Of a DNA stretch of 64,000 nucleotides, positions 19,125 to 19,340 are shown one piece after another (position 1 is the first letter of the stretch; each line of letters begins with the position of its first letter). This stretch comes from Macrostomum lignano (Eukaryota), in assembly GCA_002269645.1 (NCBI GenBank), contig NIVC01001809.1, positions 124,001 through 188,000 on the forward strand. The letters run 5' to 3'. Below the pieces are notes generated by a model. That model saw only the letters and a program-made list of their open reading frames with translations. It was not told where the DNA came from and searched no databases. The translations under genes and the position numbers were made by a program.

Positions 19125-19340
19125 ATGTTACCGACACTCCTCCTTTTCCTAAGTCTTACGGCAGTCCTGGTGCACCCAATAAGCGGCGCGTGCAACAAAC
19201 TCGATGGCGTCGGAGATGGGGGATGTTGGTTCAACAATCCGGGAAAGCGGGACGAGCGCTGCCGCAGCTGCCACGGCTGGAAGAGACACTGGTCGTACCC
19301 CTACTGGTTTGGCAGGTGCTTCTGCTGTTCATGCCCTTGA
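19125..19340 (+). CDS. Small secreted 8-cysteine peptide, defensin/mytilin-like (71 aa)
   Basis: ATG at 19125 directly after TTTCAG|A. 21-aa hydrophobic signal MLPTLLLFLSLTAVLVHPISG; 50-aa mature region ACNKLDGVGDGGCWFNNPGKRDERCRSCHGWKRHWSYPYWFGRCFCCSCP. Confidence 0.75.
   Translation: MLPTLLLFLSLTAVLVHPISGACNKLDGVGDGGCWFNNPGKRDERCRSCHGWKRHWSYPYWFGRCFCCSCP

Follow-up and report, generated by a model that had tools for sequence, protein, structure and literature searches.

The precursor gene

An intact open reading frame (ORF) of 71 codons lies on the plus strand at positions 19125..19340 of a 64,000-nucleotide stretch of the Macrostomum lignano genome (assembly GCA_002269645.1, contig NIVC01001809.1, positions 124,001 to 188,000 of the forward strand). 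This whole stretch is called the window here, and all positions are given in its numbering. The ORF starts with ATG at 19125 and ends with TGA at 19338-19340. We read it, with a probability of about 0.95, as a real gene of a real peptide family; it has no intron and had not been annotated until now. Judged from the translation, its product would be a precursor of 71 amino acids (aa), giving a secreted peptide of about 50 aa with four predicted disulfides.

The translation consists of a leader, MLPTLLLFLSLTAVLVHPISG, followed by the mature part, ACNKLDGVGDGGCWFNNPGKRDERCRSCHGWKRHWSYPYWFGRCFCCSCP. The signal-peptide-like leader (21 codons, 19125..19187, +) has a hydrophobic core of 14-15 residues (LPTLLLFLSLTAVLV) and then HPISG, the n/h/c layout of signal peptides. 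A hydrophobic leader precedes the cysteine domain in all relatives. To place the cleavage site we used the -1/-3 rule together with homology, taking the point where conservation starts in the relatives; there, cleavage is predicted 1-2 residues ahead of the first cysteine, for example between A and D of VQADC in P0004. The mature domain (50 aa, 19188..19337, +), supported by hidden Markov model (HMM) and phmmer searches and by AlphaFold, contains LDG, GCW-x-NN, KRD, WSY and GRCFCC-x-C. Its eight cysteines occupy mature positions 2, 13, 25, 28, 44, 46, 47 and 49 (C1 to C8), in the pattern C-x10-C-x11-C-x2-C-x15-C-x-C-C-x-C. With four Trp, five Arg and three Lys, the mature peptide has a net charge of +4 and an isoelectric point of 8.7. 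The stop codon (19338..19340, +) follows one residue past the last cysteine (...CSCP), so that the window precursor has no C-terminal extension; the relatives end 0-6 residues after that cysteine. The ORF is a compositional island, with a GC content of 57% and a third-codon-position GC content (GC3) of 68%, against 36-42% in the flanks. A first-pass annotation of this DNA had described an intact signal peptide and a Trp/Arg-rich part of 50 aa with eight cysteines, as well as a CxxC spacing and a CC doublet, and all of these were recovered.

One base 5' of the ATG lies the splice-acceptor-like sequence TTTCAG (19118..19123, +; cccTTTCAG, then A, then ATG). It fits the [T/C]TNCAG reported at M. 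lignano spliced-leader (SL) trans-splice acceptors (PMC8629364), and its use as such an acceptor is possible. The same CAG-A-ATG arrangement occurs in an M. lignano paralogue (P0006). The product would be 13 residues longer if translation began at another in-frame ATG, at 19086; this ATG is 5' of TTTCAG and has no counterpart in the relatives. The frame at 19124-19357 (+), shifted by one base from the peptide ORF, is open over the whole gene and is the frame that the SL-terminal ATG would read after splicing at 19123/19124. This open frame is probably a by-product of GC-rich codons, and it bears on the translation of the peptide ORF. Downstream, the putative 3' untranslated region (19341..19761, +) holds variant poly(A)-like hexamers only (AGTAAA at 19407, AATAAC at 19482, ATTAAA at 19756). 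The canonical AATAAA was not found within 400 nt after the stop, and the paralogue has one ~70 nt past its own stop.

A peptide family in flatworms and springtails

Homologues with conserved cysteines, which the first-pass annotation had named as a check of its proposal, were found. An exhaustive phmmer search with the window peptide against 1.84 billion representative proteins returned seven small secreted proteins of the same motif design (within P0004-P0011; best E 2.8e-10, P0004). Two other phmmer matches, P0003 and P0010, are Trp-rich repeat proteins and were rejected as false positives. A profile search gave four further family members. Scanning DNA with a degenerate pattern, filtered by the family HMM, added L025 and L034 (metagenomic) and two more copies in L010. 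The HMM filter discarded every pattern match from bacterial genomes and from viral contigs, and the metagenome matches were mostly chance.

Altogether, 16 distinct domains could be aligned, as x-C-S-K-x-D-G-x(2-4)-G-C-W-x-N-(N/D)-W-x-K-R-D-x-x-C-x(2-5)-C-…-R-W-S-Y-x(4-5)-G-(R/K)-C-Y-C-C-x-C. The motif common to the family is C-x2-(L/Y/F)DG…GCW-x-N(N/D)-x2-KRD-x2-C…WSY…G(R/K)CYCC-x-C. The window peptide holds GCW, N(N/D), (K)RD, WSY and G(R/K)CYCC together with the C1-C8 framework, with Y changed to F in CFCC. It also conforms to the family's precursor layout, an N-terminal signal leader with the cysteine domain at the extreme C-terminus, in less than about 110 aa. A leave-one-out family HMM was built from 15 relatives, with the window peptide excluded, and scored on 1486 ORFs of the window. 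The peptide ORF reached 58.0 bits (E 8.2e-17) and the runner-up ORF 7.0 bits, while the best of 2000 composition-matched shuffles of the peptide reached 8.3 bits. Because of this gap, a chance origin of the ORF can be dismissed.

The mature domain of the family evolves under purifying selection. For tandem copies in other genomes its ratio of nonsynonymous to synonymous divergence (dN/dS) was 0.09-0.37, and it was more conserved than the leader (dN 0.10 against 0.45 in L002). The family has not been described before, and we name its members GCW-KRD-CYCC peptides. A literature search with Mlig001810, Ocin01_15082 and the motif strings found no description of it; the only match was a Perna mytilin with GKCYCC.

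Organism names are attached only to the M. lignano proteins BOX15_Mlig001810g2/g5 and to Ocin01_15082 (ODM91601) of the springtail Orchesella cincta. Both are true homologues of the window peptide, with the same motif set and cysteine framework, and their domains are 52% (Mlig001810) and 43% (O. cincta) identical to it. The known range of the family thus takes in Platyhelminthes and Hexapoda at least. The M. lignano paralogue Mlig001810 (PAA54719, PAA54720, PAA90733 and PAA90752; hypothetical proteins of 99 aa) differs from the window copy by an extra segment of ~25 aa between leader and domain and by an x5 spacing from C3 to C4. It is intronless. One contig carries it as 2-3 tandem copies, spaced 2.5 kb apart, and a second contig has it at two more places. 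Since the GenBank annotation of M. lignano was derived from transcripts (PMC5730564), this paralogue is transcribed. The O. cincta gene differs by two GT-AG introns, one after the leader and one after C3, and by the absence of C4 and C8. Its introns and the neighbouring second and decayed third copies mark it as native to the animal and exclude contamination. In detail, the O. cincta sequence LJIJ01001486.1 (L060, 6886-10416) carries two intact three-exon copies head-to-head and the decayed third (CWFNNWSARDD … FGRYHCCSR); only two of the three are annotated.

About ten other members come from eukaryotic environmental or run-assembly sequences, namely a 1.28 Mb ENA metagenome contig with eukaryotic genes, JGI metagenomes and Logan run assemblies. 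Family genes form tandem arrays in at least four genomes. In the Logan assembly of SRR10674624 (L010, 228-2070), three of them lie within 1.9 kb, all with six cysteines and without C4 and C8; such tight spacing suggests a compact genome or a polycistronic transcript. Long-form members (P0006, P0007, P0014, L025, L034 and L008) carry a conserved segment of ~20-25 aa between leader and cysteine domain, for example QIPEAxAQYxxxKxDxxFSC. This segment, which the window copy lacks, may be a propeptide or an additional N-terminal helix. The UniRef entry A0A1I8JPJ7 (P0012, 510 aa), named 'Potassium channel subfamily K member 10', joins a low-complexity Arg/Ala/Pro N-terminus to a copy of the Mlig001810 precursor and is almost certainly a mis-fused gene model with a misleading name.

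The family is very sparse in public protein sets. Such short ORFs fall below common length cut-offs, the likely reason for this sparse representation. The window gene itself is single in its surroundings: tblastn of the peptide found no second copy in the 64-kb window. A word-index protein search with the precursor gave zero candidates.

Two observations count against the window ORF being a functional, expressed gene. Its exact product, in either the 71-aa or the 84-aa version, is absent from public protein sets; and, if SL trans-splicing takes place at 19123/19124, the SL-terminal ATG is out of frame with the peptide ORF. The copy could accordingly be a family member by descent that is silent or decaying and not expressed in M. 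lignano. Its absence from the transcript-based GenBank annotation, its repeat-rich setting with a retroelement-like region on one side and minisatellites on the other, and the missing AATAAA nearby are consistent with this. However, all eight cysteines and the family-defining residues are intact, the copy is among the best-scoring members of the family, and its coding-type GC3 has been preserved. The missing annotation would also be explained by length, as the usual ORF-calling threshold is ~100 aa and the ORF has 71. We therefore regard a silent copy as quite improbable and continue with the reading of a functional family gene.

Predicted disulfide pattern and fold, and known scaffolds

The pairing of the cysteines can be read from their losses in the family alignment. 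C4 and C8 were jointly absent in seven sequences, C3 and C7 in two aligned sequences and in the truncated P0015, and in no sequence was a single member of either pair lost. The springtail peptide lacks C4 and C8. This paired loss argues for C3-C7 and C4-C8 disulfides, which in turn leaves C1 and C2 for C5 and C6. Between C3 and C4, the window copy has x2 and the family as a whole x2-x5.

Structure prediction, which the first-pass annotation had proposed, was done with AlphaFold2 on the window peptide, using an alignment of 11 sequences. The model (predicted local distance difference test score, pLDDT, 83.2; predicted template modelling score, pTM, 0.63) has helices at residues 2-6 and 18-27 and strands at 12-15, 33-39 and 42-48, a strand-helix-hairpin arrangement. 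With P0007 as the target, the same helix-hairpin order was predicted (pLDDT 76.5). Residues i and i+2 of a beta-strand point to the same side, so C47 and C49 (C7 and C8) would face the helix with C25 and C28, and C44 and C46 (C5 and C6) would face the N-terminal arm with C2 and C13.

The predicted architecture would thus begin with a short N-terminal arm and strand, continue with an alpha-helix from the invariant (K)RD, and end with a beta-hairpin made of the WSY strand, a G-R/K turn and the CYCC-x-C strand. C3-C7 and C4-C8 would staple the helix to the last strand, as in cysteine-stabilised alpha-beta (CS-alpha-beta) peptides, and C5 and C6, on the opposite face of that strand, would anchor the N-terminal arm by bonds to C1 and C2. 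This would make a double-stapled C-x-C-C-x-C strand with the helix on one face and the arm on the other. We hold this staple and fold to be somewhat more probable than not. Three points speak against it. The alignment behind the AlphaFold model, with its 11 sequences, is shallow. The family profile gave zero matches against PDB sequences at E<=10. Foldseek searches of both models against PDB gave nothing at E<=0.001, the only defensin among the matches listed being the plant defensin 1bk8 (E 8.5, TM-score 0.34), a soft negative as Foldseek is weak at ~50 aa. Foldseek of the first model against viral structures likewise gave nothing significant, and when the peptide alone was compared with PDB sequences, all matches were noise (E>0.2). 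A local match to mini-IGF-1 (1b9g, E 0.47) was rejected as coincidental; the insulin/IGF-like framework (B-chain C-x11-C with A-chain CC-x3-C-x8-C) and the predicted fold differ.

The first-pass annotation had called the peptide defensin/mytilin-like, with a C-terminus recalling that of mussel mytilin. In cysteine-stabilised helices, a CXXXC in the helix is bonded to a CXC of the last strand, and the GXC gamma-core motif is defined in the same study (PMC5116183). The new family resembles CS-alpha-beta peptides (insect and plant defensins, drosomycin, nematode ABFs) in being small and secreted and in the predicted order of (strand)-helix-hairpin. It would also share the two bonds argued for above, from C3 and C4 in the helix to the strand C-x-C (C7 and C8; C47-S-C49 in the window peptide). 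It has a GXC gamma-core-type motif in the hairpin (G42-R43-C44), and its genes form tandem families as well. It differs in several respects. In place of the fixed CXXXC of the helix, the window copy has x2 and the family x2-x5. The third canonical bond is missing, as no member has a cysteine in the middle (WSY) strand. Four cysteines sit on one strand (C-x-C-C-x-C), which would have both of its faces stapled, and the charge is not consistently positive. An hhalign comparison with drosomycin gave 0.6%; in a control search, drosomycin reached plant defensins and heliomicin by sequence alone. The cysteine spacing is unlike that of canonical CS-alpha-beta defensins, as had been noted at first pass.

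Mytilins have the array C-X3-C-X3-C-X4-C-X11-C-X-C-X-C-X2-C in a mature peptide of 34 aa, with a charge of +7 to +13 and an anionic C-terminal propeptide; they are restricted to mussels, and their disulfides are 1-5, 2-6, 3-7 and 4-8 (PMC7168163). Both they and the new family have eight cysteines, and the mytilin hairpin GRCYC is similar to GRCFCC or GRCYCC (overall, (Y)xGRCYC-KC against GRCYCC-x-C). Some Perna mytilins even contain GKCYCC, and the C3-C7 and C4-C8 bonds argued for above are compatible with the mytilin array. Beyond this hairpin the likeness ends. The hhalign probability against mytilin-B, whose sequence was checked against PDB 2EEM, was 24% and confined to 15 hairpin columns, and BLASTP against 2EEM gave E 2.2. 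No relationship to mytilin exists over the N-terminal two-thirds, and its cysteine array, the length of 34 aa, the high charge and the anionic C-terminal extension are all absent from the window peptide. Added to the lack of PDB matches for the family profile, where the drosomycin control reached plant defensins, this makes it very improbable that the peptide truly belongs to the mussel mytilins or the canonical CS-alpha-beta defensins, as a family member or an orthologue, a view we consider largely refuted. Of the mytilin-like C-terminus proposed at first pass, the hairpin likeness stood and the homology did not.

We would class the peptide neither with the mytilins nor with the canonical defensins, to which its likeness is loose; the most fitting description is that of a new family whose predicted staple is CS-alpha-beta-like. 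The earlier suggestion of a new scaffold agrees with the absence of matches among PDB sequences, PDB folds and the searched literature; what found no support is a place among the mytilins or canonical defensins.

Possible function and genomic surroundings

As a guess from sequence features, the family peptide may be an extracellular host-defence effector, antimicrobial or antifungal; we rate this as the likeliest of the roles considered, at somewhat below even odds. Traits of the kind found in defence peptides are the predicted secretion, the small disulfide-rich design, the tandem arrays, the gain and loss of whole disulfides and the GXC motif. Both M. lignano copies are cationic and rich in aromatic residues, with charges of +4 (window) and +6. 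Two family-wide features tell against a defence role. The net charge ranges from -2 to +6, so cationicity is not conserved, and the selection on the mature domain, purifying rather than diversifying, equally fits a signalling ligand. Together with the conserved polar and aromatic patch (WxNN, KRD, WSY), the charge range and purifying selection suggest specific target recognition. A host-defence peptide of this kind would probably act through its conserved W-x-N-N / K-R-D / W-S-Y surface rather than by non-specific cationic membrane lysis. An endogenous ligand or a channel-directed toxin would account for these features almost equally well.

An endogenous peptide with a signalling or reproductive role (for instance a seminal-fluid protein, a pheromone or a ligand of the hormone type) would have a specific receptor and would not act on microbes. 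The conservation of the mature domain beyond that of the leader, the retention of the surface motif across phyla and the variable net charge are all in line with such a role, and M. lignano is known for its many small proteins secreted by the prostate (PMC5977470). However, tandem arrays and repeated loss of whole disulfides are unusual for hormones, and there is no conserved dibasic processing site, because the K of KRD varies. Mlig001810 did not turn up in the supplement text checked for papers on seminal fluid and reproduction, whose tables may use other identifiers. A signalling role is thus unlikely, though less so than that of a toxin.

A defensive or offensive toxin, i.e. a disulfide-rich peptide directed at ion channels or membranes of predators or prey, would share its small secreted scaffold and helix-to-strand staples with many arthropod channel toxins (PMC5116183), and tandem gene families would suit it as well. 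Against this, toxins usually combine a conserved leader with a hypervariable mature part, and this family shows the opposite. No sequence or fold match to any PDB toxin was found, and neither M. lignano nor springtails are known to be venomous. All this leaves a toxin improbable.

Very few immune effectors have been characterised in free-living flatworms and springtails. A compact, conserved scaffold with four disulfides and no solved relative would extend the catalogue of invertebrate host-defence and bioactive peptides, and peptide engineering would gain a new stable framework. The paired cysteine loss gives a disulfide map that can be tested directly, and the window gene exemplifies the short genes that the M. 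lignano annotation misses. Practical value hinges on demonstrating expression and activity of the peptide. A bolder and rather doubtful proposal is that the family represents old, protostome-wide (flatworm and hexapod) secreted miniproteins whose double-stapled disulfide architecture is not yet among solved structures. They would then have a miniprotein fold of their own and form an unrecognised class of immune effectors in invertebrates, overlooked through ORF-length cut-offs.

The peptide gene sits in repeat-rich DNA, with a cysteine-rich-repeat ORF on one side (13731-14219, -) and retroelement-like ORFs on the other (23335-26156, -). The former encodes 162 aa of repeated C-x-K-C-x-x-G-S-(F/Y) units and looks like an exon of an ephrin-receptor-like or TNFR-like cysteine-rich repeat protein. 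The latter are a run with a 306-aa ORF carrying a YLDD reverse-transcriptase-type motif and with gag-like ORFs upstream, a label given by motif reading alone; no PDB sequence match was found at E<=0.01. Further along, an ORF of ~338 aa (37638-38720, +) starts with MQAVLFPLILWSAVTTAHG, has a signal-like leader and probably encodes a secreted protein; it had no PDB sequence match at E<=0.1. A single-exon ORF of 697 aa (42468-44561, +) shares 99% identity with M. lignano BOX15_Mlig022208g1, which marks the window as nuclear DNA of this species, and 82% with a paralogue that has a Pfam Ion_trans domain (TRP-like cation channel). Minisatellites are extremely dense, with 41 Tandem Repeats Finder (TRF) rows in the window (e.g. 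986-2688, 9738-12099, 57638-60371 and 60860-62623). One 12-mer is repeated about 227 times and one 32-mer 53 times at 97% identity, and several unrelated arrays have a common 23-bp period.
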